Shown: positions 7,033 through 64,000 of the stretch, one piece after another | Layout of the letters: each line of letters opens with the position of its first letter | How positions within the stretch are numbered: the stretch's first letter is position 1 | Assembly: GCA_025558095.1 (NCBI GenBank) | Contig: JAIVFI010000021.1 | Span: forward strand, 620,001-684,000 | Direction of reading: 5' to 3' | DNA: 64,000 bases | Source: Hyaloraphidium curvatum SAG 235-1 | Taxonomy: Eukaryota; Fungi; Monoblepharomycota | Notes under the pieces: model-generated | Seen by the model: only the letters and a program-made list of their open reading frames with translations | Database searches by the model: none | Told to the model about the DNA's origin: nothing | Program-made: the position numbers and the translations under genes

Positions 7033-9125
7033 ATGGTACGCGTGCCGTCGAGCAACTTGGCCCCGCTGAACGCCGCGCGCACCTGCATTTAGTTCTTCTC
7101 GGAGAGCATTCTTTCCAAGAAAGGGTCCCTCGCTCGCATTTGGCTCGCCGCTCACTGGGAGCGCAAGCTCAGCAAAGCGCAATTTCTGCAGACCAACATC
7201 CAGCAGTCTGTCGGGGCTATCGTCCACAATGAGCAGCCCATGGCATTGAGATTGACCGGACAACTGCTGCTCGGGGTGGTCAAAATTTACTCCAGGAAGG
7301 CGAGGTATTTGCTGGAGGACTGCAACGAGGCGTTGATGAAGATCAAGCTGGTAGGCCGCGCCTTCTTGATCTCCTGGCGATACTTCTACCTGCCTCGCAG
7401 GCTTTCCGACCAGGCGCGGTGGATCTTCCTGAGGAGCAGGCGACGGCAGCCTACCGGGCCATCACGCTGCCCGATGTGATCACCGAGTTCGAAATCCTGC
7501 TTCCCGAGCCCGGATTTCAACTGCACAAGTAAGGATCACGCTTTACTGCTTTTCGCGCACCTAAGCCTTGCACATTTCTTCGACTCAAGCTTTCGTGAGC
7601 GGTCTAGCCAGCTCTCATCGCAGACCCTGTCCCGTAAGGAGGACATTACCATAACGGAATCTCCCCTGCGGCTTTCCCAACCCCTGGTCATCGAAGAGCC
7701 CGACATTCTCGCGCAACCCCTCATCGATGACGGCGCTGGCGACGAGTGGCGATTCGACTTGGCCGATCTAGAGGCTTTGCCGAAACGTCCACGGCTCGCA
7801 GCGGACGAAGACTCGATGGAGATTGAAGTCGGGAGGCGCGGCCCTGCAAATGATGATTCGTTTGCGGACAACTTTGGTTTTGGCGAGATGGACAGCTTTC
7901 TCGATGCCCATGCCAAGGGTTCCGCAGCAGAGGGTCAAAGTGACATTCTGGACCCGGCCCTTATGGTGGTCGAAGCGCCCAATCACATTGAGGGAGACCG
8001 TGTTTGGGACATGGCGGAACCAATCCTTTTGGCCCCTGCCTTTGCGGATGACGCTTTCCGGATCCCGCCCTCAGGCCGGTGTTGGATGGGCGAAGCTGAG
8101 TTATGCGCTGACTCGGCTCCCTCAGATGTCAACCAAGAAGGCGATGATGGAGCCTACCTGTTCCCGAGCCCGAATGTCAAGGCAAAGAAAGCGAAGCAGG
8201 GTGTCCAGCCGCGGAAGAGAAAGCTCCACTTCGATAGCCACTTGGAAATCCCGTCGCGGCAGATACAAAGCCAGCTCCAGGATTCGCACGGCATTGTGCT
8301 TGATGCGGTAAGTTTGCGGAGGGCTCCGTGTCCTCACTGACCATCGTTATCCGTCACCGTAGGACCCATATCTTCCTCGCTTTGCAACAACGATCCGTTT
8401 GCGCGAACGAGAATCGCTCGGCGTTCAGCATTTTTCTACAGCAGCATGCTTTGGAACTGTTCGCGGGGACCTTTGGGCTCTTGTGGTGGCGGAGCCACGT
8501 GTCCAGCAGCGGCCGAACTCGACGAAGCCCAGTGCCGATTGGGAAGCATTCGGCTATGCAGAAGGTGCTGGCGTTTATGTGCTGCGTCTAGCTTTGCTGA
8601 AACCACCCCGCCGTCGGTTACAGGTCCGATCTCTCCCCACGACCATGTCCGTGCCTCGGAGATGGAGCCCGGACCTGCATATGATGCAGATGGGCCTTTC
8701 GATCTCACAATTGATTATCAGCCAGGCGACGTCAACGAGATGGCGATGCCAGCTACTCCTGCTGGCCACGCAGCAGTTCATCCGACGACGCCGTTCGTTC
8801 TTGACGCGGTCAGCGTGCCGTCGGCCGACGATCAGGCTCACAGGAAGGCGGCCGACCCGGCACCAACAACGGATGCACTCATGGGGATGATTCGTGCCGT
8901 CAATGGCATGCGGGTGAACTTCGGCGACCTGACAATCAAGGCATGGTCTTGATGCAAAAGGCCCAGCATCGCGGACTAAATGGCCGCCCTCTCTAGGCAA
9001 AGCGGGAAGATGTTGTGAAGCTTTTCTTCGAGATTTTGCTCTTGAAAACAGCAAACAAGATTCAAGTTGAACAGACAGAGCCTTTTGGACCCATCACGAT
9101 TGTGCAAATGCGGGGAAGTCACTAA
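7033..9125 (+). CDS. RAD21: Cohesin kleisin Rad21/Scc1, multi-exon; ATG-only first exon, last intron GC-AG
   Basis: M|FFSESILSKKGPLARIWLAAHWERKLSKAQFLQTNI...MALRLTGQLLLGVVKIYSRKARYLLEDCNEALMKIK; C-terminal winged helix KLFFEILLLKT...VEQTEPFGPI. Confidence 0.95.
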
Positions 9126-43988: not shown

Positions 43989-45244
43989 GATTGGAGAGCC
44001 CGACGAATAGACATCGGAGATCTAACATTCGCGTTGTTTCCAGTAGGTCGTGCGGCGCCACGATTGGGAACGGCTTCGGTAATTGCGTGAGCAGACTTCA
44101 GTTGGGTGAAGAAGTCGGGTTCTCCACACGCCACACGCGTCGGAAGCCTCATTGGGTTTCATCTTTGTTTCTACTGCGAGCGCAGCACACCCGAGCCCCG
44201 GCGACGCGGTTGAAGGCCCACTCCGAGGTGTCCCGACTCGATATGGCGATGGTAGAGCCCCTCGATGGTTCAACGAGGGGAGCGGCCTTGACGCCGTGGT
44301 GGCAGGGGCGATTGCCCCCCTCAGGGTCGCATTCAAGGACAAGCAAAGATCTCTGTCCGCGCGAGCAGCCCTTGCGGTGTCGATGAACCCCGCTAACGTA
44401 GGAAGACCGCGTGTCCACCACCTGGGGCAAGCAACCAAAACAGTCCCAAAACCGAGCTTACCGCGCCCAGCGCGAGTTCTTCTCTTTCTTTGACGTTTTG
44501 CGAGGGTAATTGCGGGATGGGCGGGGCATCAAGGCGCAATACACGCGCTTCCGATCCCGCGTCGATGAGGGGCCTTCCAGGCCACCGGGGACCCGGGAAG
44601 CCCCGAACCGGCCGCGAAGATGTTCTGCTGGCCTCCGCTCCATCCGTGGGTTTTGACCCTTTGGGCACCCCACAGGGGCACCGCAGCACACTGCTGTTCG
44701 CAGTCCGCCACCCGCTCGCATCGTCCTTCAGCTGGACTGCCGTCGCCCCCAACGACTCCAGAAAACGGTTGGCATATCCTCTTGCCAGCTTCCGAGCTCC
44801 AGGACCTCAGAAAAGTTGCCTTGGCCGCGTTCTCGCGCGAACCGTCCGACGAAGGTGGCGCGGCGTTCCACGCAAACATCTAAATCGCAGGGGTCTCGCG
44901 TGGAGTGGCGGGCCCCGGGCACGGCTTGGCCGCCTTTCTACGCCGCGCCGCGATTTTGATTTTGGGCATCATTGCCTGCCTCCATGGTGTTGGTGGGCTT
45001 TTTGATATAGTTCGTATGAGCTCGCGGCCGGCCGCGCGGAACGGACCACCATGCCCGTTTGCGTGCTGCCGCTCGGGAAACCCATGAAGTACATCACGAG
45101 CATATTCAATCATGCTTAGCGGCACTATCTGGTGAGCTTCCCGGGGGATTCATTCATTTTTGGTGTGTTGCCGTTTGCTCGCCCCGCCTGGACATATACT
45201 ACACTACATCCATGTGGCACTATCTCTGAGGACTTCTAACGTCA

Positions 45245-45278
45245 GGGGAAGTCGGATAGCGGTCTATTCCGCCAGTTT
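45245..45278 (+). pseudogene. Isolated 5' half of tRNA-Leu (positions 1-33); possibly a decayed tRNA extending to ~45355
   Basis: 45241-45278 matches 50321-50358 at 36/38 nt and runs into TTTTT; downstream shows only weak traces of a 3' half (ATTGGTC, GGTTCG, CTCAACTA). Confidence 0.8.
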
Positions 45279-48676: not shown

Positions 48677-50324
48677 GGAAGCACGGGTACATGGCATTCA
48701 GCAAACGCGGGTGGACTCGAGGGCATGGTGCCCCTTGATGATCGGAGCTTATTGAGTCACGGTATCTCGGTCCAATTGTTGATTGTTCATTAATGATGTA
48801 GACGCGAAGATTGATTGATATGATTAATCGATTCGTCGATTCGTCATCTAGTCCTCGATCCGTCATCCAAGGGGTGTTGCTTTCTCCGAGGGGCGGAGGT
48901 CCCCGGGAATTTGCATTTCCAGCTATGTCCCGAGCGTTGGCAACTTTGATTTATCGGCATAGCGCGTGGGTGGGTTTAGGCGAGTTGCGGTTGACCGTCA
49001 AAAATGATGGCGATGCTTAGTAGTGAGCGTATGGACCCAAAGCTTGCCCGCCCGCGGCACCTGAAACCGAATCCACAACGCCATTCGCAATCAATCCTGC
49101 GAATGCTGCACCGAATGCGGGCGGCAGACCCCATTGTGCCCGAGCTTCGGCGCCACTGGTTGAGCGGCAGCTTCATTGAGTTTCCATCCTTTCGAAACTG
49201 ACGTCAGGCCAGCGCGCCCAGTGACGCCGACATCGCCGAACCGACGCCCGCTCGCGGGCAACTTCAAACGAAAGGTTGCTTGGATTGAAAGAAGGCGTCC
49301 ACGGATAAAAAGGATGGGAAACCGCGTCCGGCAGCCCAGTCGCCAGGTGCTCGGTCGGCTTGCTTGCCCACGCTGGTGTGACGAGGCCAGATGCATCCGC
49401 CGCAGTAGCAAATCGCGACGAAGATCGCCAAAAAAGTTGGCAACTCGGCTTTCACGGCATCCTCGACCGGTTCAGCGTGCCCAATAGTACCGGGGATCCC
49501 TCCTCGTCCGGTCCAGCACGCAGTCTTTCAAAAGCCGACACGCCGTCCAGAGGCAGTCCATAGACCACCAAACAAGCTCGTCCCGTCAGAACGCCCAGTC
49601 TCCTCAATTGAGTGCGGTGCGGTGCGGTCACGTTCATGGTGCCAACGGGTGCGTTGCAGCGCGCTCCCCGGCCACGGAAGAGCTTCTAGCGCTCCAACCA
49701 TCGGTCCAGCAACTCTCACGTACTCTATGGCGCGGTCTCCGGCGAGATTCGGCGGCCAGAGGCGGTGTCACCTCGAGGCGATGGGCTGCAAAAAATAAGG
49801 AGGCAGGACGCATCGGCGCCGGCGTCGGAACCCGCGCACCCGCCGCCCGCCGCCCGCGCCCGCCGCGCCCGCGCCCGCGCCGGCACGAGCGCCCCCTTTC
49901 CCGGTCTGGTTGCCGAGGCCGGGCCGCGCCATCGTCCGGGGACCGGGGTCGGTCGAGTCACCGACAACAAGCGAACAAAGGACGCCTCCCAAACATCGAA
50001 CCGGCGCTCATCAGTACATCAGTACATCTCTTGCAGAGAATGAACATGATTAGCTGCGAAAGGATGCGGCCGGCGGGCCACCCACGAGGCTCGTCGTGCT
50101 CGCTCAGCCGGCTGAGGTGCAGATCGGTCACACCCACCTTGACGGCTCTCGCCCCATAATAGTGAAGCGAAGTTGCCATCAAAACTCCACAGATCTTGAT
50201 TCCATGGTTCGAAGACTAGAGGGAAAGCGGCGGAGAAGGGAATTTGAACATGGAAAACGCGACGAATCGAGCGACCGGACGTGGGAGCTCTCTGTAGGAC
50301 CTTCCACCGGGATTATGAATGTCA

Positions 50325-50430
50325 GGGGAAGTCGGATAGCGGCCAATTCCGCCAGTTTAAGGATTCCCTCCTTCAGGGAAGTCGTCCACTGGTCCCGAAA
50401 GGGGCGTGGGTTCGAATCCCACCTTCCTCA
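50325..50430 (+). tRNA. tRNA-Leu(AAG) with a 24-nt intron at 37/38
   Basis: Acceptor GGGGAAG/CTTCCTC+A; D-arm GGA..TCC; anticodon stem CCAGT/ACTGG with TT-AAG-G; variable arm CCC-GAAA-GGG; T-arm GTGGG-TTCGAAT-CCCAC; TTTT at 50447-50450. Confidence 0.9.
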
Positions 50431-53400
50431 ACTAGTGCATTCCACTCTTTTGTCCCTCTGAATGCTATTCTGTTCCACTCCAAGGGCACTGCACATCCGT
50501 TCCCTGCAGCAATAAGCTTTTCTGTTGCTGCCCAGCCGTGCCGCCAGCCCAACAGACAGGGATGGAACGGTATTTGCGTCACCAATACATCTGATTCCTG
50601 ATGCTGACCATCTATGGGATCTGGAGCCTCAAGGAGCGTGGGATACGAATCCCACCTTCCTCGCGCGGGATACGAATCCCACCTTCCTCAACTAGTGCAT
50701 TCCACTCTTTTGTCCCTCTGAATGCTATTCTGTTCCACTCCAAGGGCACTGCACATCCGTTCCCTGCAGCAATAAGCTTTTCTGTTGCTGCCCAGCCGTG
50801 CCGCCAGCCCAACAGACAGGGATGGAACGGTATTTGCGTCACCAATACATCTGATTCCTGATGCTGACCATCTATGGGATCTGGAGCCTCAAGGAGCGTG
50901 GGATACGAATCCCACCTTCCTCGCGCGGGATACGAATCCCACCTTCCTCAACTAGTGCATTCCACTCTTTTGTCCCTCTGAATGCTATTCTGTTCCATTC
51001 CAAGCGCACTGCACCATCCGTTCGGCAGCAAGCTTTTCAGGGTGCCCGGCCGTCGCATGAGCTGAACTCCATCACGGGCTTCCTTTCAAAGTCCACAAAG
51101 GACATGGAAGTCCGGGGAATTGAAAGTGATGCACAACAAGTAAGGACAAGCTTTTGTAAGTGGCAGCACAGTAGAGGTGCCACAGCAATCGCAACGGCAC
51201 GGTACGGTGTGCTAGGGTCTGTCTGTGCTGCTCACCAGTTGTGCTGTTGGACTGTGTCGTGCTCCATTGCCTTCCTAAGCAAGCTGCTCATGCTGACCAT
51301 CTCTGGATCCTCAAGGAGCGTGGGTTCCGAATCCCACCTTCCTCAACTAGTGCATTCCACTCTTTTGTCCCTCTGAATGCTATTCTGTTCCATTCCAAGC
51401 GCACTGCACCATCCGTTCGGCAGCAAGCTTTTCAGGGTGCCCGGCCGTCGCATGAGCTGAACTCCATCACGGGCTTCCTTTCAAAGTCCACAAAGGACAT
51501 GGAAGTCCGGGGAATTGAAAGTGATGCACAACAAGTAAGGACAAGCTTTTGTAAGTGGCAGCACAGTAGAGGTGCCACAGCAATCGCAACGGCACGGTAC
51601 GGTGTGCTAGGGTCTGTCTGTGCTGCTCACCAGTTGTGCTGTTGGACTGTGTCGTGCTCCATTGCCTTCCTAAGCAAGCTGCTCATGCTGACCATCTCTG
51701 GATCCTCAAGGAGCGTGGGTTCCGAATCCCACCTTCCTCAACTAGTGCATTCCACTCTTTTGTCCCTCTGAATGCTATTCTGTTCCATTCCAAGCGCACT
51801 GCACCATCCGTTCGGCAGCAAGCTTTTCAGGGTGCCCGGCCGTCGCATGAGCTGAACTCCATCACGGGCTTCCTTTCAAAGTCCACAAAGGACATGGAAG
51901 TCCGGGGAATTGAAAGTGATGCACAACAAGTAAGGACAAGCTTTTGTAAGTGGCAGCACAGTAGAGGTGCCACAGCAATCGCAACGGCACGGTACGGTGT
52001 GCTAGGGTCTGTCTGTGCTGCTCACCAGTTGTGCTGTTGGACTGTGTCGTGCTCCATTGCCTTCCTAAGCAAGCTGCTCATGCTGACCATCTCTGGATCC
52101 TCAAGGAGCGTGGGTTCCGAATCCCACCTTCCTCAACTAGTGCATTCCACTCTTTTGTCCCTCTGAATGCTATTCTGTTCCATTCCAAGCGCACTGCACC
52201 ATCCGTTCGGCAGCAAGCTTTTCAGGGTGCCCGGCCGTCGCATGAGCTGAACTCCATCACGGGCTTCCTTTCAAAGTCCACAAAGGACATGGAAGTCCGG
52301 GGAATTGAAAGTGATGCACAACAAGTAAGGACAAGCTTTTGTAAGTGGCAGCACAGTAGAGGTGCCACAGCAATCGCAACGGCACGGTACGGTGTGCTAG
52401 GGTCTGTCTGTGCTGCTCACCAGTTGTGCTGTTGGACTGTGTCGTGCTCCATTGCCTTCCTAAGCAAGCTGCTCATGCTGACCATCTCTGGATCCTCAAG
52501 GAGCGTGGGTTCCGAATCCCACCTTCCTCAACTAGTGCATTCCACTCTTTTGTCCCTCTGAATGCTATTCTGTTCCATTCCAAGCGCACTGCACCATCCG
52601 TTCGGCAGCAAGCTTTTCAGGGTGCCCGGCCGTCGCATGAGCTGAACTCCATCACGGGCTTCCTTTCAAAGTCCACAAAGGACATGGAAGTCCGGGGAAT
52701 TGAAAGTGATGCACAACAAGTAAGGACAAGCTTTTGTAAGTGGCAGCACAGTAGAGGTGCCACAGCAATCGCAACGGCACGGTACGGTGTGCTAGGGTCT
52801 GTCTGTGCTGCTCACCAGTTGTGCTGTTGGACTGTGTCGTGCTCCATTGCCTTCCTAAGCAAGCTGCTCATGCTGACCATCTCTGGATCCTCAAGGAGCG
52901 TGGGTTCCGAATCCCACCTTCCTCAACTAGTGCATTCCACTCTTTTGTCCCTCTGAATGCTATTCTGTTCCATTCCAAGCGCACTGCACCATCCGTTCGG
53001 CAGCAAGCTTTTCAGGGTGCCCGGCCGTCGCATGAGCTGAACTCCATCACGGGCTTCCTTTCAAAGTCCACAAAGGACATGGAAGTCCGGGGAATTGAAA
53101 GTGATGCACAACAAGTAAGGACAAGCTTTTGTAAGTGGCAGCACAGTAGAGGTGCCACAGCAATCGCAACGGCACGGTACGGTGTGCTAGGGTCTGTCTG
53201 TGCTGCTCACCAGTTGTGCTGTTGGACTGTGTCGTGCTCCATTGCCTTCCTAAGCAAGCTGCTCATGCTGACCATCTCTGGATCCTCAAGGAGCGTGGGT
53301 TCCGAATCCCACCTTCCTCAACTAGTGCATTCCACTCTTTTGTCCCTCTGAATGCTATTCTGTTCCATTCCAAGCGCACTGCACCATCCGTTCGGCAGCA

Positions 53401-56400
53401 AGCTTTTCAGGGTGCCCGGCCGTCGCATGAGCTGAACTCCATCACGGGCTTCCTTTCAAAGTCCACAAAGGACATGGAAGTCCGGGGAATTGAAAGTGAT
53501 GCACAACAAGTAAGGACAAGCTTTTGTAAGTGGCAGCACAGTAGAGGTGCCACAGCAATCGCAACGGCACGGTACGGTGTGCTAGGGTCTGTCTGTGCTG
53601 CTCACCAGTTGTGCTGTTGGACTGTGTCGTGCTCCATTGCCTTCCTAAGCAAGCTGCTCATGCTGACCATCTCTGGATCCTCAAGGAGCGTGGGTTCCGA
53701 ATCCCACCTTCCTCAACTAGTGCATTCCACTCTTTTGTCCCTCTGAATGCTATTCTGTTCCATTCCAAGCGCACTGCACCATCCGTTCGGCAGCAAGCTT
53801 TTCAGGGTGCCCGGCCGTCGCATGAGCTGAACTCCATCACGGGCTTCCTTTCAAAGTCCACAAAGGACATGGAAGTCCGGGGAATTGAAAGTGATGCACA
53901 ACAAGTAAGGACAAGCTTTTGTAAGTGGCAGCACAGTAGAGGTGCCACAGCAATCGCAACGGCACGGTACGGTGTGCTAGGGTCTGTCTGTGCTGCTCAC
54001 CAGTTGTGCTGTTGGACTGTGTCGTGCTCCATGCACCCTTACATGGGTAGAGCTGCGGTGCATGGCTTCAGAATGCCTTCCTAAGCAAGCTGCTCATGCT
54101 GACCATCTCTGGATCCTCAAAGAGCGTGGGTTCCGAACCCCACCTTCCTCAACTAGTGCATTCCACTCTTTTGTCCCTCTGAATGCTATTCTGTTCCACT
54201 CCAAGGGCACTGCACATCCGTTCCCTGCAGCAATAAGCTTTTCTGTTGCTGCCCAGCCGTGCCGCCAGCCCAACAGACAGGGATGGAACGGTATTTGCGT
54301 CACCAATACATCTGATTCCTGATGCTGACCATCTATGGGATCTGGAGCCTCAACGAGCATGGGATACGAATCCCACCTTCCTCGCGCGGGATACGAATCC
54401 CACCTTCCTCAACTAGTGCATTCCACTCTTTTGTCCCTCTGAATGCTATTCTGTTCCACTCCAAGCGCACTGCACATCCGTTCCCTGCAGCAATAAGCTT
54501 TTCTGTTGCTGCCCAGCCGTGCCGCCAGCCCAACAGACAGCAATGGAACGGCATTTGCGTCACCAATACATCTGATTCCTGATGCTGACCATCTATGGGA
54601 TCTGGAGCCTCAAGGAGCGTGGGATACGAATCCCACCTTCCTCAACTAGTGCATTCCACTCTTTTGTCCCTCTGAATGCTGTTCTGTTCCACTCCAAGGG
54701 CACTGCACATCCGTTCCCTGCAGCAATAAGCTTTTCTGTTGCTGCCCAGCCGTGCCGCCAGCCCAACAGACAGGGATGGAACGGTATTTGCGTCACCAAT
54801 ACATCTGATTCCTGATGCTGACCATCTATGGGATCTGGAGCCTCAACGAGCATGGGATACGAATCCCACCTTCCTCGCGCGGGATACGAATCCCACCTTC
54901 CTCAACTAGTGCATTCCACTCTTTTGTCCCTCTGAATGCTATTCTGTTCCACTCCAAGGGCACTGCACATCCGTTCCCTGCAGCAATAAGCTTTTCTGTT
55001 GCTGCCCAGCCGTGCCGCCAGCCCAACAGACAGGGATGGAACGGCATTTGCGTCACCAATACATCTGATTCCTGATGCTGACCATCTATGGGATCTGGAG
55101 CCTCAACGAGCATGGGATACGAATCCCACCTTCCTCGCGCGGGATACGAATCCTACCTTCCTCAACTAGTGCATTCCACTCTTTTGTCCCTCTGAATGCT
55201 ATTCTGTTCCACTCCAAGGGCACTGCACATCCGTTCCCTGCAGCAATAAGCTTTTCTGTTGCTGCCCAGCCGTGCCGCCAGCCCAACAGACAGGGATGGA
55301 ACGGTATTTGCGTCACCAATACATCTGATTCCTGATGCTGACCATCTATGGGATCTGGAGCCTCAAGGAGCGTGGGATACGAATCCCACCTTCCTCATGC
55401 TGGATGCCCTCTGCTCTTTTGCCCCTCTGAATGCTATTCTGTTCCACTCCAAGGGCACTGCACATCCGTTCCCTGCAGCAATAAGCTTTTCTGTTGCTGC
55501 CCAGCCGTGCCGCCAGCCCAACAGACAGGGATGGAACGGCATTTGCGTCACCAATACATCTGATTCCTGATGCTGACCATCTATGGGATCTGGAGCCTCA
55601 AGGAGCGTGGGATACGAATCCCACCTTCCTCATGCTGGATGCCCTCTGCTCTTTTGCCCCTCTGAATGCTATTCTGTTCCACTCCAAGGGCACTGCACAT
55701 CCGTTCCCTGCAGCAATAAGCTTTTCTGTTGCTGCCCAGCCGTGCCGCCAGCCCAACAGACAGGGATGGAACGGCATTTGCGTCACCAATACATCTGATT
55801 CCTGATGCTGACCATCTATGGGATCTGGAGCCTCAAGGAGCGTGGGATACGAATCCCACCTTCCTCATGCTGGATGCCCTCTGCTCTTTTGCCCCTCTGA
55901 ATGCTATTCTGTTCCACTCCAAGGGCACTGCACATCCGTTCCCTGCAGCAATAAGCTTTTCTGTTGCTGCCCAGCCGTGCCGCCAGCCCAACAGACAGGG
56001 ATGGAACGGTATTTGCGTCACCAATACATCTGATTCCTGATGCTGACCATCTATGGGATCTGGAGCCTCAACGAGCATGGGATACGAATCCCACCTTCCT
56101 CATGCTGGATGCCCTCTGCTCTTTTGCCCCTCTGAATGCTATTCTGTTCCACTCCAAGGGCACTGCACATCCGTTCCCTGCAGCAATAAGCTTTTCTGTT
56201 GCTGCCCAGCCGTGCCGCCAGCCCAACAGACAGGGATGGAACGGCATTTGCGTCACCAATACATCTGATTCCTGATGCTGACCATCTATGGGATCTGGAG
56301 CCTCAAGGAGCGTGGGATACGAATCCCACCTTCCTCGCGCGGGATACGAATCCCACCTTCCTCAACTAGTGCATTCCACTCTTTTGTCCCTCTGAATGCT

Positions 56401-59400
56401 ATTCTGTTCCACTCCAAGGGCACTGCACATCCGTTCCCTGCAGCAATAAGCTTTTCTGTTGCTGCCCAGCCGTGCCGCCAGCCCAACAGACAGGGATGGA
56501 ACGGTATTTGCGTCACCAATACATCTGATTCCTGATGCTGACCATCTATGGGATCTGGAGCCTCAAGGAGCGTGGGATACGAATCCCACCTTCCTCATGC
56601 TGGATGCCCTCTGCTCTTTTGCCCCTCTGAATGCTATTCTGTTCCACTCCAAGGGCACTGCACATCCGTTCCCTGCAGCAATAAGCTTTTCTGTTGCTGC
56701 CCAGCCGTGCCGCCAGCCCAACAGACAGGGATGGAACGGTATTTGCGTCACCAATACATCTGATTCCTGATGCTGACCATCTATGGGATCTGGAGCCTCA
56801 ACGAGCATGGGATACGAATCCCACCTTCCTCGCGCGGGATACGAATCCCACCTTCCTCAACTAGTGCATTCCACTCTTTTGTCCCTCTGAATGCTATTCT
56901 GTTCCACTCCAAGGGCACTGCACATCCGTTCCCTGCAGCAATAAGCTTTTCTGTTGCTGCCCAGCCGTGCCGCCAGCCCAACAGACAGGGATGGAACGGC
57001 ATTTGCGTCACCAATACATCTGATTCCTGATGCTGACCATCTATGGGATCTGGAGCCTCAAGGAGCGTGGGATACGAATCCCACCTTCCTCGCGCGGGAT
57101 ACGAATCCCACCTTCCTCAACTAGTGCATTCCACTCTTTTGTCCCTCTGAATGCTATTCTGTTCCACTCCAAGGGCACTGCACATCCGTTCCCTGCAGCA
57201 ATAAGCTTTTCTGTTGCTGCCCAGCCGTGCCGCCAGCCCAACAGACAGGGATGGAACGGTATTTGCGTCACCAATACATCTGATTCCTGATGCTGACCAT
57301 CTATGGGATCTGGAGCCTCAAGGAGCGTGGGATACGAATCCCACCTTCCTCATGCTGGATGCCCTCTGCTCTTTTGCCCCTCTGAATGCTATTCTGTTCC
57401 ACTCCAAGGGCACTGCACATCCGTTCCCTGCAGCAATAAGCTTTTCTGTTGCTGCCCAGCCGTGCCGCCAGCCCAACAGACAGGGATGGAACGGTATTTG
57501 CGTCACCAATACATCTGATTCCTGATGCTGACCATCTATGGGATCTGGAGCCTCAACGAGCATGGGATACGAATCCCACCTTCCTCGCGCGGGATACGAA
57601 TCCCACCTTCCTCAACTAGTGCATTCCACTCTTTTGTCCCTCTGAATGCTATTCTGTTCCACTCCAAGGGCACTGCACATCCGTTCCCTGCAGCAATAAG
57701 CTTTTCTGTTGCTGCCCAGCCGTGCCGCCAGCCCAACAGACAGGGATGGAACGGCATTTGCGTCACCAATACATCTGATTCCTGATGCTGACCATCTATG
57801 GGATCTGGAGCCTCAAGGAGCGTGGGATACGAATCCCACCTTCCTCGCGCGGGATACGAATCCCACCTTCCTCAACTAGTGCATTCCACTCTTTTGTCCC
57901 TCTGAATGCTATTCTGTTCCACTCCAAGGGCACTGCACATCCGTTCCCTGCAGCAATAAGCTTTTCTGTTGCTGCCCAGCCGTGCCGCCAGCCCAACAGA
58001 CAGGGATGGAACGGTATTTGCGTCACCAATACATCTGATTCCTGATGCTGACCATCTATGGGATCTGGAGCCTCAAGGAGCGTGGGATACGAATCCCACC
58101 TTCCTCATGCTGGATGCCCTCTGCTCTTTTGCCCCTCTGAATGCTATTCTGTTCCACTCCAAGGGCACTGCACATCCGTTCCCTGCAGCAATAAGCTTTT
58201 CTGTTGCTGCCCAGCCGTGCCGCCAGCCCAACAGACAGGGATGGAACGGTATTTGCGTCACCAATACATCTGATTCCTGATGCTGACCATCTATGGGATC
58301 TGGAGCCTCAAGGAGCGTGGGATACGAATCCCACCTTCCTCATGCTGGATGCCCTCTGCTCTTTTGCCCCTCTGAATGCTATTCTGTTCCACTCCAAGGG
58401 CACTGCACATCCGTTCCCTGCAGCAATAAGCTTTTCTGTTGCTGCCCAGCCGTGCCGCCAGCCCAACAGACAGGGATGGAACGGCATTTGCGTCACCAAT
58501 ACATCTGATTCCTGATGCTGACCATCTATGGGATCTGGAGCCTCAACGAGCATGGGATACGAATCCCACCTTCCTCGCGCGGGATACGAATCCCACCTTC
58601 CTCAACTAGTGCATTCCACTCTTTTGTCCCTCTGAATGCTATTCTGTTCCACTCCAAGGGCACTGCACATCCGTTCCCTGCAGCAATAAGCTTTTCTGTT
58701 GCTGCCCAGCCGTGCCGCCAGCCCAACAGACAGGGATGGAACGGTATTTGCGTCACCAATACATCTGATTCCTGATGCTGACCATCTATGGGATCTGGAG
58801 CCTCAACGAGCATGGGATACGAATCCCACCTTCCTCGCGCGGGATACGAATCCCACCTTCCTCAACTAGTGCATTCCACTCTTTTGTCCCTCTGAATGCT
58901 ATTCTGTTCCACTCCAAGGGCACTGCACATCCGTTCCCTGCAGCAATAAGCTTTTCTGTTGCTGCCCAGCCGTGCCGCCAGCCCAACAGACAGGGATGGA
59001 ACGGTATTTGCGTCACCAATACATCTGATTCCTGATGCTGACCATCTATGGGATCTGGAGCCTCAACGAGCATGGGATACGAATCCCACCTTCCTCGCGC
59101 GGGATACGAATCCCACCTTCCTCAACTAGTGCATTCCACTCTTTTGTCCCTCTGAATGCTATTCTGTTCCACTCCAAGGGCACTGCACATCCGTTCCCTG
59201 CAGCAATAAGCTTTTCTGTTGCTGCCCAGCCGTGCCGCCAGCCCAACAGACAGCAATGGAACGGCATTTGCGTCACCAATACATCTGATTCCTGATGCTG
59301 ACCATCTATGGGATCTGGAGCCTCAACGAGCATGGGATACGAATCCCACCTTCCTCGCGCGGGATACGAATCCCACCTTCCTCAACTAGTGCATTCCACT

Positions 59401-62400
59401 CTTTTGTCCCTCTGAATGCTATTCTGTTCCACTCCAAGGGCACTGCACATCCGTTCCCTGCAGCAATAAGCTTTTCTGTTGCTGCCCAGCCGTGCCGCCA
59501 GCCCAACAGACAGGGATGGAACGGTATTTGCGTCACCAATACATCTGATTCCTGATGCTGACCATCTATGGGATCTGGAGCCTCAAGGAGCGTGGGATAC
59601 GAATCCCACCTTCCTCATGCTGGATGCCCTCTGCTCTTTTGCCCCTCTGAATGCTATTCTGTTCCACTCCAAGGGCACTGCACATCCGTTCCCTGCAGCA
59701 ATAAGCTTTTCTGTTGCTGCCCAGCCGTGCCGCCAGCCCAACAGACAGGGATGGAACGGCATTTGCGTCACCAATACATCTGATTCCTGATGCTGACCAT
59801 CTATGGGATCTGGAGCCTCAAGGAGCGTGGGATACGAATCCCACCTTCCTCATGCTGGATGCCCTCTGCTCTTTTGCCCCTCTGAATGCTATTCTGTTCC
59901 ACTCCAAGGGCACTGCACATCCGTTCCCTGCAGCAATAAGCTTTTCTGTTGCTGCCCAGCCGTGCCGCCAGCCCAACAGACAGGGATGGAACGGCATTTG
60001 CGTCACCAATACATCTGATTCCTGATGCTGACCATCTATGGGATCTGGAGCCTCAAGGAGCGTGGGATACGAATCCCACCTTCCTCATGCTGGATGCCCT
60101 CTGCTCTTTTGCCCCTCTGAATGCTATTCTGTTCCACTCCAAGGGCACTGCACATCCGTTCCCTGCAGCAATAAGCTTTTCTGTTGCTGCCCAGCCGTGC
60201 CGCCAGCCCAACAGACAGGGATGGAACGGTATTTGCGTCACCAATACATCTGATTCCTGATGCTGACCATCTATGGGATCTGGAGCCTCAAGGAGCGTGG
60301 GATACGAATCCCACCTTCCTCATGCTGGATGCCCTCTGCTCTTTTGCCCCTCTGAATGCTATTCTGTTCCACTCCAAGGGCACTGCACATCCGTTCCCTG
60401 CAGCAATAAGCTTTTCTGTTGCTGCCCAGCCGTGCCGCCAGCCCAACAGACAGGGATGGAACGGCATTTGCGTCACCAATACATCTGATTCCTGATGCTG
60501 ACCATCTATGGGATCTGGAGCCTCAACGAGCATGGGATACGAATCCCACCTTCCTCGCGCGGGATACGAATCCCACCTTCCTCAACTAGTGCATTCCACT
60601 CTTTTGTCCCTCTGAATGCTATTCTGTTCCACTCCAAGGGCACTGCACATCCGTTCCCTGCAGCAATAAGCTTTTCTGTTGCTGCCCAGCCGTGCCGCCA
60701 GCCCAACAGACAGGGATGGAACGGTATTTGCGTCACCAATACATCTGATTCCTGATGCTGACCATCTATGGGATCTGGAGCCTCAACGAGCATGGGATAC
60801 GAATCCCACCTTCCTCGCGCGGGATACGAATCCCACCTTCCTCAACTAGTGCATTCCACTCTTTTGTCCCTCTGAATGCTATTCTGTTCCACTCCAAGGG
60901 CACTGCACATCCGTTCCCTGCAGCAATAAGCTTTTCTGTTGCTGCCCAGCCGTGCCGCCAGCCCAACAGACAGGGATGGAACGGTATTTGCGTCACCAAT
61001 ACATCTGATTCCTGATGCTGACCATCTATGGGATCTGGAGCCTCAACGAGCATGGGATACGAATCCCACCTTCCTCGCGCGGGATACGAATCCCACCTTC
61101 CTCAACTAGTGCATTCCACTCTTTTGTCCCTCTGAATGCTATTCTGTTCCACTCCAAGGGCACTGCACATCCGTTCCCTGCAGCAATAAGCTTTTCTGTT
61201 GCTGCCCAGCCGTGCCGCCAGCCCAACAGACAGGGATGGAACGGTATTTGCGTCACCAATACATCTGATTCCTGATGCTGACCATCTATGGGATCTGGAG
61301 CCTCAAGGAGCGTGGGATACGAATCCCACCTTCCTCATGCTGGATGCCCTCTGCTCTTTTGCCCCTCTGAATGCTATTCTGTTCCACTCCAAGGGCACTG
61401 CACATCCGTTCCCTGCAGCAATAAGCTTTTCTGTTGCTGCCCAGCCGTGCCGCCAGCCCAACAGACAGGGATGGAACGGTATTTGCGTCACCAATACATC
61501 TGATTCCTGATGCTGACCATCTATGGGATCTGGAGCCTCAAGGAGCGTGGGATACGAATCCCACCTTCCTCATGCTGGATGCCCTCTGCTCTTTTGCCCC
61601 TCTGAATGCTATTCTGTTCCACTCCAAGGGCACTGCACATCCGTTCCCTGCAGCAATAAGCTTTTCTGTTGCTGCCCAGCCGTGCCGCCAGCCCAACAGA
61701 CAGGGATGGAACGGCATTTGCGTCACCAATACATCTGATTCCTGATGCTGACCATCTATGGGATCTGGAGCCTCAACGAGCATGGGATACGAATCCCACC
61801 TTCCTCGCGCGGGATACGAATCCCACCTTCCTCAACTAGTGCATTCCACTCTTTTGTCCCTCTGAATGCTATTCTGTTCCACTCCAAGGGCACTGCACAT
61901 CCGTTCCCTGCAGCAATAAGCTTTTCTGTTGCTGCCCAGCCGTGCCGCCAGCCCAACAGACAGGGATGGAACGGTATTTGCGTCACCAATACATCTGATT
62001 CCTGATGCTGACCATCTATGGGATCTGGAGCCTCAACGAGCATGGGATACGAATCCCACCTTCCTCGCGCGGGATACGAATCCCACCTTCCTCAACTAGT
62101 GCATTCCACTCTTTTGTCCCTCTGAATGCTATTCTGTTCCACTCCAAGGGCACTGCACATCCGTTCCCTGCAGCAATAAGCTTTTCTGTTGCTGCCCAGC
62201 CGTGCCGCCAGCCCAACAGACAGGGATGGAACGGTATTTGCGTCACCAATACATCTGATTCCTGATGCTGACCATCTATGGGATCTGGAGCCTCAACGAG
62301 CATGGGATACGAATCCCACCTTCCTCGCGCGGGATACGAATCCCACCTTCCTCAACTAGTGCATTCCACTCTTTTGCCCCTCTGAATGCTATTCTGTTCC

Positions 62401-64000
62401 ACTCCAAGGGCACTGCACATCCGTTCCCTGCAGCAATAAGCTTTTCTGTTGCTGCCCAGCCGTGCCGCCAGCCCAACAGACAGCAATGGAACGGCATTTG
62501 CGTCACCAATACATCTGATTCCTGATGCTGACCATCTATGGGATCTGGAGCCTCAACGAGCATGGGATACGAATCCCACCTTCCTCGCGCGGGATACGAA
62601 TCCCACCTTCCTCAACTAGTGCATTCCACTCTTTTGTCCCTCTGAATGCTATTCTGTTCCACTCCAAGGGCACTGCACATCCGTTCCCTGCAGCAATAAG
62701 CTTTTCTGTTGCTGCCCAGCCGTGCCGCCAGCCCAACAGACAGGGATGGAACGGTATTTGCGTCACCAATACATCTGATTCCTGATGCTGACCATCTATG
62801 GGATCTGGAGCCTCAAGGAGCGTGGGATACGAATCCCACCTTCCTCATGCTGGATGCCCTCTGCTCTTTTGCCCCTCTGAATGCTATTCTGTTCCACTCC
62901 AAGGGCACTGCACATCCGTTCCCTGCAGCAATAAGCTTTTCTGTTGCTGCCCAGCCGTGCCGCCAGCCCAACAGACAGGGATGGAACGGTATTTGCGTCA
63001 CCAATACATCTGATTCCTGATGCTGACCATCTATGGGATCTGGAGCCTCAAGGAGCGTGGGATACGAATCCCACCTTCCTCATGCTGGATGCCCTCTGCT
63101 CTTTTGCCCCTCTGAATGCTATTCTGTTCCACTCCAAGGGCACTGCACATCCGTTCCCTGCAGCAATAAGCTTTTCTGTTGCTGCCCAGCCGTGCCGCCA
63201 GCCCAACAGACAGGGATGGAACGGCATTTGCGTCACCAATACATCTGATTCCTGATGCTGACCATCTATGGGATCTGGAGCCTCAACGAGCATGGGATAC
63301 GAATCCCACCTTCCTCGCGCGGGATACGAATCCCACCTTCCTCAACTAGTGCATTCCACTCTTTTGTCCCTCTGAATGCTATTCTGTTCCACTCCAAGGG
63401 CACTGCACATCCGTTCCCTGCAGCAATAAGCTTTTCTGTTGCTGCCCAGCCGTGCCGCCAGCCCAACAGACAGGGATGGAACGGTATTTGCGTCACCAAT
63501 ACATCTGATTCCTGATGCTGACCATCTATGGGATCTGGATCCTCAACGAGCATGGGATACGAATCCCACCTTCCTCGCGCGGGATACGAATCCCACCTTC
63601 CTCAACTAGTGCATTCCACTCTTTTGTCCCTCTGAATGCTATTCTGTTCCACTCCAAGGGCACTGCACATCCGTTCCCTGCAGCAATAAGCTTTTCTGTT
63701 GCTGCCCAGCCGTGCCGCCAGCCCAACAGACAGGGATGGAACGGTATTTGCGTCACCAATACATCTGATTCCTGATGCTGACCATCTATGGGATCTGGAG
63801 CCTCAACGAGCATGGGATACGAATCCCACCTTCCTCGCGCGGGATACGAATCCCACCTTCCTCAACTAGTGCATTCCACTCTTTTGTCCCTCTGAATGCT
63901 ATTCTGTTCCACTCCAAGGGCACTGCACATCCGTTCCCTGCAGCAATAAGCTTTTCTGTTGCTGCCCAGCCGTGCCGCCAGCCCAACAGACAGGGATGGA
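50405..64000. repeat. tRNA-derived tandem satellite array (395, 260 and 235 bp monomers), continuing past the window end
   Basis: Marker ATGCTGACCAT recurs at 50601, 50861, 51290, then every 395 nt to 53660, then 54096, 54322 and at mostly 260/235 spacing to 63775. Every monomer carries GAAYCCCACCTTCCTC. Confidence 0.98.
50935..54130. repeat. Block of eight ~395-bp monomers; the last has an extra 41 nt
   Basis: GCACCATCCGTTCGGCAG at 51011, 51406, 51801, 52196, 52591, 52986, 53381, 53776. Confidence 0.97.

Follow-up and report, generated by a model that had tools for sequence, protein, structure and literature searches.

The DNA stretch analyzed here (hereinafter, the window) comprises 64,000 nucleotides, positions 620,001-684,000 of contig C21, which is 706,498 bp long in a eukaryotic assembly of 31.9 Mb and 55 contigs. 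It contains an intact gene for a leucine transfer RNA (tRNA), tRNA-Leu(AAG), followed directly by a long tandem array of units that each repeat the 3' end of this gene together with its downstream flank. We are highly confident that the tRNA gene seeded the array and that the array arose by tandem duplication; the account as a whole, namely, that of a locus-specific satellite born from the adjoining tRNA gene, we consider probable, if far from certain. The first-pass annotation, made from the letters of the window, had proposed that the gene itself seeded the satellite, and this proposal stands: the first unit consists of the 3' end and trailer of the gene, and the same architecture recurs at the genes for tRNA-Leu(CAG) and tRNA-Ser(CGA). 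The Leu-AAG array is the extreme, largest case of duplication of half a tRNA gene with its flank that is seen across the genome.

The tRNA-Leu(AAG) gene and its array

The array does not end with the window at position 64000, as the first-pass annotation had it (50325-64000), but goes on to about position 685,979 of C21; it consists of 58 units in about 15.6 kb. The gene and the array are composed of the following features (positions are those of the window unless the contig is given):

50325-50430, + strand: intact tRNA-Leu(AAG) gene (Rfam RF00005, 38.7 bits, gathering threshold 29), the only tRNA that Rfam finds in the window; the A box region is TCGGATAGCGG
~50363-50386, + strand: intron of 24 nt (ARAGORN, intron mode), with a normal cloverleaf
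50409-50419, + strand: B box, GGTTCGAATCC
50405-50645, + strand: seed unit, that is, the T arm and acceptor strand of the gene, the trailer and ~190 bp of 3' flank
50448-51, + strand: RNA polymerase III (Pol III) terminator TTTT in the seed unit
50646-50932, + strand: first 260-bp unit, plus the doubled 27-mer at the start of the following unit
50933-54133, + strand: block of 395-bp units (7.8 copies, 100% identical, by Tandem Repeats Finder)
54134-55379, + strand: mixed 233-bp and 260-bp units
55380-64000 and on to C21:685,979, + strand: higher-order block of 235-bp (B) and 260-bp (A) units

The gene was missed by ARAGORN in its default bacterial mode and required the intron mode. Its paralog, tRNA-Leu(CAG), resides on the same contig, and an alignment of the two genes reveals a compensatory change in the anticodon stem (T:A to C:G), which argues that both are functional.

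Continuity between the gene and the array is direct. As the first-pass annotation had noticed, the T arm, acceptor strand and trailer of the gene are the first copy of the array: the parent-copy alignment starts at gene position 80 (~63 under a lenient reading) and continues through the trailer, and weaker similarity (17 of 24 positions) can be discerned by eye as far as the 3' strand of the anticodon stem. From position 50413 to the end of the window, Tandem Repeats Finder reports periods of 260, 395, 235 and 495 bp. The window has 72 occurrences of the 17-mer CGAATCCCACCTTCCTC, which spans the T loop and T stem on their 3' side as well as the acceptor strand; the distances between them are 233, 27, 395 and 235. 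The 260-bp unit is the 233-bp unit with a second 27-nt piece of T arm and acceptor strand, so that the core reads GCGTGGGATACGAATCCCACCTTCCTC and then GCGCGGG...; six of the 395-bp units are identical to the base and carry an extra C in the T loop (GGTTCCGAATCC); and in the last block, the pattern B B A A A A recurs with a period of ~1.5 kb. Altogether, there are 21 distinct sequences among the 58 units. The array thus has the composition of a satellite, with head-to-tail units over kilobases, homogenized variants and higher-order periods.

The trailers of the units behave as described in the first-pass annotation: the 233/260-bp and 395-bp units keep the trailer of the gene, AACTAGTGCATTCC...CTTTTG, and the 235-bp units have a variant one, ATGCTGGATGCC...CTTTTG. 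The motif CTTTTG is present in every unit and also closes the trailers of the tRNA genes read here.

We mapped the monomer in the genome by exact pattern searches with the 17-mer core and a 39-mer of the unit body, with the reversed pattern as the control. The 17-mer has 106 exact copies, all on C21 (none for the reversed control), of which 83 belong to the main array and 23, on the opposite strand, to small arrays at 452.7-453.7 and 460.6-461.8 kb. The 39-mer has 50 matches genome-wide, all of them at C21:670-686 kb, that is, within the array. One array per chromosome, each beside a tRNA-Leu gene, had been envisaged; instead, the monomer is confined to a single locus on C21, which speaks against a centromeric satellite common to the chromosomes. 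In metagenomes, neither the unit junction nor the 3' end of tRNA-Leu had a match.

The claim that all monomer types repeat the T-arm/acceptor core survives in part. The core is present in all types, but its T loop is altered in the copies: where the gene has GGTTCGAATCC, the units have GGATACGAATCC or GGTTCCGAATCC and, judging by these replacements, do not appear to provide the consensus B box for TFIIIC. In the 233-, 260- and 235-bp units, the B-box core GGTTCGA is changed to GGATACGA; in the 395-bp units, it is changed to GGTTCCGA. Similar lesions are found in the copies that accompany other tRNA genes (described below), namely, GGTTCCGA in the Ser-CGA units, GGCCCGA in the Leu-CAG units, GGTCGA in the Ile-AAT copy and GGTCCGA in the Arg-CCT copy, so that the copy carries a B-box lesion in all five parent-copy alignments that cover the B box. 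In these five pairs, 7 of the 57 B-box columns differ vs 10 of 631 elsewhere (odds ratio 8.7, Fisher p = 1.9e-4). Outside of this five-pair test, a separate alignment for Ala-CGC shows one base change in the B box of the copy. Because the 3' units lack an A box and carry B-box lesions, they are probably inert by-products rather than Pol III genes or TFIIIC sites. Selection may have disfavored a second TFIIIC site close to a gene that the cell needs; alternatively, the lesions may be present because only dead copies were amplified, or may result from local mutagenesis.

Upstream of the gene, gene density would, according to the first-pass annotation, collapse from ~44 kb of the window on; this stretch contains low-copy dispersed repeats and one further tRNA fragment:

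45241-45277, + strand: orphan 5' half of tRNA-Leu (exact 18-mer match and alignment)

This fragment includes the acceptor strand, the D arm and the 5' strand of the anticodon stem, with the break in the anticodon loop. It has the same orientation as the intact gene, from which it is separated by 5,080 bp on the upstream side, and, by our reading of the alignment, has ~40 nt of upstream flank in common with it. The stretch concerned reaches up to 50358; the DNA between the two is not duplicated and harbors low-copy dispersed repeats. The orphan half may be a product of the same kind of duplication, with insertions between the copies occurring later. Immediately upstream of the gene (48885-50122) is one of these dispersed low-copy repeats, with matches in collinear pieces (69-86% identity) on contigs C2, C14, C21 (at 276 kb), C36 and C10; this repeat may represent either an old element or a small family of genes. 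We dismissed it as a possible targeter of tRNA genes, given that only one of its five copies is near a tRNA.

Partial tRNA gene duplications across the genome

For comparison with other tRNA genes, we took the matches of a whole-genome Rfam search with 2 kb on either side; ARAGORN called 32 genes in these loci. Introns of 9-63 nt are present in 21 of the 32 genes, across many isotypes, and in these calls the redundancy of tRNA genes looks low, with 1-3 genes per anticodon. Direct copies of the 3' part and flank lie downstream of six of the 32 genes: Ala-CGC (one copy), Ile-AAT (two), Arg-CCT (one), Ser-CGA, Leu-CAG and Leu-AAG. Conversely, direct copies of the 5' part and flank lie upstream of five genes (Arg-CCG, with two copies, Thr-CGT, Ala-CGC, Ala-TGC and Ser-CGA). 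The opposite polarity was not found at any of the 32. In the aligned 3' cases, the DNA that comes after the fragment is the gene's own flank, so that the structure is A-B-A-B. This polarity and structure are the expected geometry of a tandem duplication in which one breakpoint falls within the gene and the other beyond it, and such a duplication always leaves one gene intact. Inverted partial tRNA copies are present in the sampled loci as well. No tRNA gene was found on one contig examined from a relative.

Besides Leu-AAG, two of these cases have grown into arrays:

C21:461,820-461,911, - strand: tRNA-Leu(CAG) gene (Rfam, 43.7 bits; 10-nt intron; identity read from the alignment)
C21:460.6-461.8 kb, - strand: Leu-CAG array, made of the 3' end of the gene and its trailer in units of 69, 86 and 133 bp
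C21:452.7-453.7 kb, - strand: segmental copy of part of the Leu-CAG array, with no intact gene at its head
C14:468.66-471.84 kb (stretches L033:2075-4112 and L038:1-1142): tRNA-Ser(CGA) array of ~21 units of 148 bp, made of the 3' end of the gene and its trailer

ARAGORN itself labels the Leu-CAG paralog as Phe(AAA), with the intron placed differently. In the sampled stretches, the Leu-CAG array with its gene occupies L005:5573-6911 (C21:460.6-461.9 kb), and the segmental copy, 8 kb away, occupies L003:7648-8865 (452.6-453.9 kb). The Ser-CGA gene additionally has a 5'-half copy 239 bp upstream; the CpG content of this locus is normal, and there is no retroelement nearby.

Among the tandem repeats with a period of at least 50 bp in 327 kb of sampled sequence, 8 of 10 are anchored in a tRNA gene; this sample is biased towards tRNA loci, but by chance, a boundary would land within a 90-bp gene in only ~2% of cases. 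The homology boundary of the 3' copies is found in the interval from the 3' splice site to the T stem, and that of the 5' copies lies approximately between positions 27 and 48, so that both are located between the A and B boxes; this clustering is to be read with the detection bias against very short fragments in mind. A comparison of the unit bodies of six tRNA loci showed no relationship among them, which eliminates a shared mobile element within them. A tRNA-derived short interspersed nuclear element was discarded as well, given that the units contain the 3' part only, lack an A box and are found at a single locus instead of being dispersed.

The retroelement cluster and the drop in CpG

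The truncated last unit of the Leu-AAG array ends a few bases from a long terminal repeat (LTR) of a full-length Copia element with gag, integrase and RVT_2 domains (Pfam). The two LTRs of this element are 99-100% identical, and the element is young. The 20 kb from the end of the array to the end of the contig hold nothing but Copia, Gypsy-like and other reverse-transcriptase elements (C21:686-706.5 kb); the contig stops within an integrase-like sequence, without a telomere repeat. Searches with the Copia polyprotein and a second reverse transcriptase as probes showed that the two co-cluster, with one cluster per contig on ~38 contigs; the clusters are ~1-20 kb in size, and only two contigs have a second locus, ~55 kb away. 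The sole cluster of C21 starts where the satellite ends. The features of this part of the analysis are:

L001:1980-2124 and 7330-7474: LTRs of the Copia element
C3:306-318 kb, C15:422-434 kb, C36:171-189 kb and C21:686-706.5 kb: examples of retroelement clusters
C21: tRNA-Leu(AAG), verified gene, joined to the cluster via the array
L023:1-572 and 1594-2073 (C9:446.96-449.03 kb): tRNA-Arg(CCG), verified gene, ~1.4 kb from the cluster edge
C43:220,984-221,076 (L019:2001-2093): tRNA, verified gene, ~1.8 kb from the C43 cluster
C18, C19 and C22: matches to GGTTCGAATCC within 2 kb of clusters, unverified B-box matches

A retroelement cluster that occurs once per chromosome resembles what is seen at the regional centromeres of a number of fungi, such as the Grem-LINE1 pericentromeres of Mucor (10.1101/706580), and because of this one-per-chromosome distribution, we regard the clusters as candidate regional centromeres.

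The intact Pol III gene sits exactly where the ratio of observed to expected (o/e) CpG falls from ~1.05 to ~0.55, with the retroelement cluster beyond. CpG o/e is 1.01-1.16 in all 3-kb windows up to the gene and 0.51-0.55 throughout the array, where the depletion is accompanied by an excess of TpG/CpA. By unit type, the values are 0.41-0.62 vs 1.08 +/- 0.15 for the background upstream of the tRNA, and the lowest value among the 126-212 background windows of the same sizes is 0.67. One retroelement of the cluster is equally depleted (0.50). The genome encodes several C5 cytosine methyltransferase domains (PF00145; at C12:523 kb, C4:762 kb, C4:158 kb, C12:548 kb and C31:109 kb). In the other tRNA-anchored arrays and copies (Ser-CGA, Leu-CAG, Ile, Arg and Ala), CpG o/e is normal (0.9-1.1). 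This pattern is suggestive of the Leu-AAG array, unlike its sister arrays, having long resided in methylated chromatin. CpG-type transitions are not dominant among the polymorphisms between units.

Besides Leu-AAG, two verified tRNA genes are located near cluster edges. The Arg-CCG gene has two 141-bp copies of its 5' half and upstream flank, on the side of the gene that faces the cluster. For the gene on C43, ARAGORN reads the amber-reading anticodon CTA (labelled Pyl), probably, by mis-parsing an intron-bearing tRNA. Genome-wide, the pattern GGTTCGAATCC has 21 matches, compared with 4 for the reversed control. An enrichment of tRNA genes at cluster edges is possible. A more degenerate B-box pattern, dominated by chance matches, showed no enrichment near clusters; most tRNA genes are not near clusters, and the Ser-CGA and Leu-CAG arrays lie 93 kb and 225 kb, respectively, from the clusters of their contigs. 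The earlier proposal that the window reaches the edge of a centromere or a heterochromatin domain is thus supported, if only indirectly, with regard to the edge position, by the Copia cluster and the CpG switch, and fails with regard to the satellite as a centromeric repeat, which is a single-locus sequence. We put the chance that the heterochromatin-edge position of the array is meaningful at about even; that the satellite itself is centromeric appears very improbable at best.

The Copia element next to the array invites an observation of its own. Close to its 5' LTR, L001:7300-7329 (minus strand) is complementary to the anticodon-loop region of tRNA-Met (TGGGCTCATA), which suggests that the element could be primed by an internal region or a half of a tRNA, a mode of priming known from the Drosophila copia element. 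We had entertained the idea that the primer-binding site matches tRNA-Leu, with silencing through tRNA fragments; the match to the anticodon region of tRNA-Met disposes of it.

With respect to the affinities of the genome, the TRAPPC13 protein has its nearest matches (~35% identity) among proteins of chytrids and other early-diverging fungi.

Origin of the array and comparison with known systems

The array originated by a local tandem duplication, followed by expansion and homogenization. One breakpoint of the duplication fell within the tRNA-Leu(AAG) gene, in the interval from the anticodon arm to the T arm, and the other ~230 bp downstream. The gene was left intact, and a second 3' part, with a Pol III terminator and 3' flank, was added. 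Judging from the anatomy of the array, slippage would then have doubled the 27-nt T arm, indels would have produced the 395-bp and 235-bp variants, and unequal exchange would have expanded and homogenized the units to 15.6 kb with higher-order periodicity. The likeliest initial cause would be replication-fork stalling or a transcription-replication conflict at very heavily used, low-copy tRNA genes, followed by template switching. If there are only 1-3 genes per anticodon, as the ARAGORN calls suggest, each tRNA gene must be very heavily transcribed, and fork stalling with template switching would be expected to yield both direct duplications and inverted partial copies; we give fork stalling as the cause about as much credence as doubt. 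The large size of this particular array could be due to its location on the far side of the gene, in CpG-depleted, probably, cytosine-methylated chromatin that borders the retroelement cluster. A barrier, if there is any, would be the intact gene and not the satellite.

Several points weigh against this account. The 32 genes are a partial tRNA set, given that the Rfam search scored 63 of 281 candidates, of which 31 matched. The copy number and the six identical 395-bp units come from the assembly alone. Fork stalling is inferred, no consistent microhomology was seen at the junctions, and the breakpoints cluster in the middle of the gene, which a site-specific enzyme could explain too. The CpG depletion pertains to three related monomer types, effectively, one lineage, and the retroelement clusters have only the status of candidate centromeres. 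A bolder version of the account, which we regard as unlikely, is that tRNA genes are systematic birthplaces of repeats owing to a dedicated process in which cutting or template switching takes place between the A and B boxes, with a pericentromeric boundary module among the results. In that case, half-tRNA tandem duplications, inverted repeats and tRNA-bounded islands would arise genome-wide, and the tRNA-Leu gene with its methylated, B-box-dead satellite would be a boundary module and a live view of the birth of a satellite and a boundary from a Pol III gene.

Could the array instead be a functional pericentromeric element, either part of a centromere or a multi-copy barrier of TFIIIC-binding B boxes that holds retroelement heterochromatin off the genes? 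Its location exactly between the last unique DNA and the only retroelement cluster of C21, the CpG switch at the tRNA gene, the two further verified tRNA genes 1-2 kb from clusters on C9 and C43, the three unverified B-box matches at no more than 2 kb from clusters on C18, C19 and C22, and the precedent of tRNA genes and tRNA-associated repeats in fission-yeast centromeres (PMC6538654) all speak for this possibility. Nevertheless, we find it decidedly unlikely: the monomer is a single-locus sequence, the B-box core is broken in all unit types, with the lesions enriched there, the equivalent arrays are 93 kb and 225 kb away from the clusters of their contigs, and the noisier B-box pattern is not enriched near clusters. 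The main alternative for the genome-wide pattern is site-specific recombination, whereby the anticodon-loop region is the integration site of a tRNA-targeting recombinase or mobile DNA that brings along or duplicates half of the tRNA, in the manner of prokaryotic islands, and repeated events build the arrays. Repeated 3' fragments behind an intact tRNA are the classic signature of integration, the breakpoints indeed lie between the A and B boxes, and non-homologous DNA separates the orphan 5' half from the gene 5,080 bp downstream. However, after each fragment comes the gene's own flank, yielding A-B-A-B rather than A-insert-A-flank, the unit bodies share nothing across loci, units of 69-395 bp have no coding capacity, the breakpoints are not at a single fixed nucleotide, and no integrase domain was detected in the larger open reading frames tested in the 5-kb segment; we consider this explanation quite improbable.

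The other two alternatives fare worse. The first-pass annotation had offered, as a second option, a decayed tRNA gene array, that is, complete tRNA-Leu genes in tandem, of the Entamoeba type, of which only the 3' halves remain recognizable. By eye, a vaguely D-arm-like stretch can be seen ~110 nt from the acceptor end, close to the length of the gene. However, in global and local alignments, the 20-80 nt before the core are no more similar to the 5' part or upstream flank of the tRNA than shuffled sequences are, Rfam finds no tRNA-like match in any unit at E-values up to 10, and the young two-copy cases at other genes start cleanly in the middle of the gene; we reject this option as barely credible. 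An assembly artefact, in which a short repeat was over-expanded or mis-joined, might account for the six 395-bp units that are identical to the base, and the contig does end 20 kb further on, inside a retroelement. Given the 21 distinct unit variants in an ordered higher-order pattern, the clean transitions among the three unit types, the same architecture at independent loci and the defined Copia junction that closes the array, an artefact is highly improbable.

How a satellite began can seldom be seen, given that in most cases its seed has decayed; here, the seed, an intact and probably essential tRNA gene, is still attached to the array. Moreover, stages of 2, 3, 13, ~21 and 58 units exist at different tRNA genes of one genome, so that birth, growth and homogenization can be compared. 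The observations suggest that heavily used Pol III genes are hot spots of tandem duplication in this lineage, and they show that, in the copies, it is the orphan promoter boxes that are preferentially disabled. The location of the largest array beside a once-per-chromosome cluster provides a concrete locus for probing a possible barrier function of tRNA genes (tDNA) outside of yeasts.

In full-text literature searches, we found no description of eukaryotic tandem arrays composed of half a tRNA gene with its flank. The nearest systems each have some features in common with the array described here. In Schizosaccharomyces pombe, tDNAs act as heterochromatin barriers, an activity that requires an intact B box; by sequence comparison, the B boxes of the units are broken. 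The centromeres of Schizosaccharomyces contain tRNA genes and tRNA-gene-associated repeats, TARs (PMC6538654). As in those centromeres, a tRNA gene marks the transition from gene-bearing DNA to a once-per-chromosome domain of repeats and retroelements, and the repeats are tRNA-associated; unlike the whole-tRNA repeats common to the Schizosaccharomyces centromeres, the units here are gene fragments at one locus. In Dictyostelium, an external B box lies ~41 bp downstream of 66% of the tRNA genes (PMC3159450), which is similar to our case in that an extra copy of tRNA promoter sequence is found just downstream of the genes on a genome-wide scale. The Dictyostelium copy, however, is a single conserved, apparently functional B box, whereas here, the 3' part, terminator and flank are repeated with periods of 130-400 bp, amplify to dozens of units and have the B box preferentially damaged. 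In Entamoeba, there are long tandem arrays linked to tRNA genes, for which a structural chromosomal role has been proposed; those units are complete functional tRNA genes, whereas the units described here retain only the last 27-45 nt.

Integrated islands in prokaryotes are flanked by partial tRNA copies (PMC9897764), and the succession of an intact tRNA and direct repeats of its 3' portion is the same as in these bacterial and archaeal islands; unlike in the islands, there is no foreign insert and no integrase domain in the larger open reading frames tested, the gene's own flank is repeated, and upstream copies of the 5' half are equally common. Finally, replication forks of budding yeast are well known to pause at tRNA genes. 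Rearrangements in yeasts are often bounded by tRNAs (PMC2817429), but these are mostly large rearrangements, often mediated by Ty/LTR homology, whereas those observed here are short tandem duplications with intragenic breakpoints, some of which are now satellites. The Leu-AAG array is a satellite that arose from part of a gene, at what may be a tDNA boundary, and it differs from each of the nearest known systems in a defining feature.

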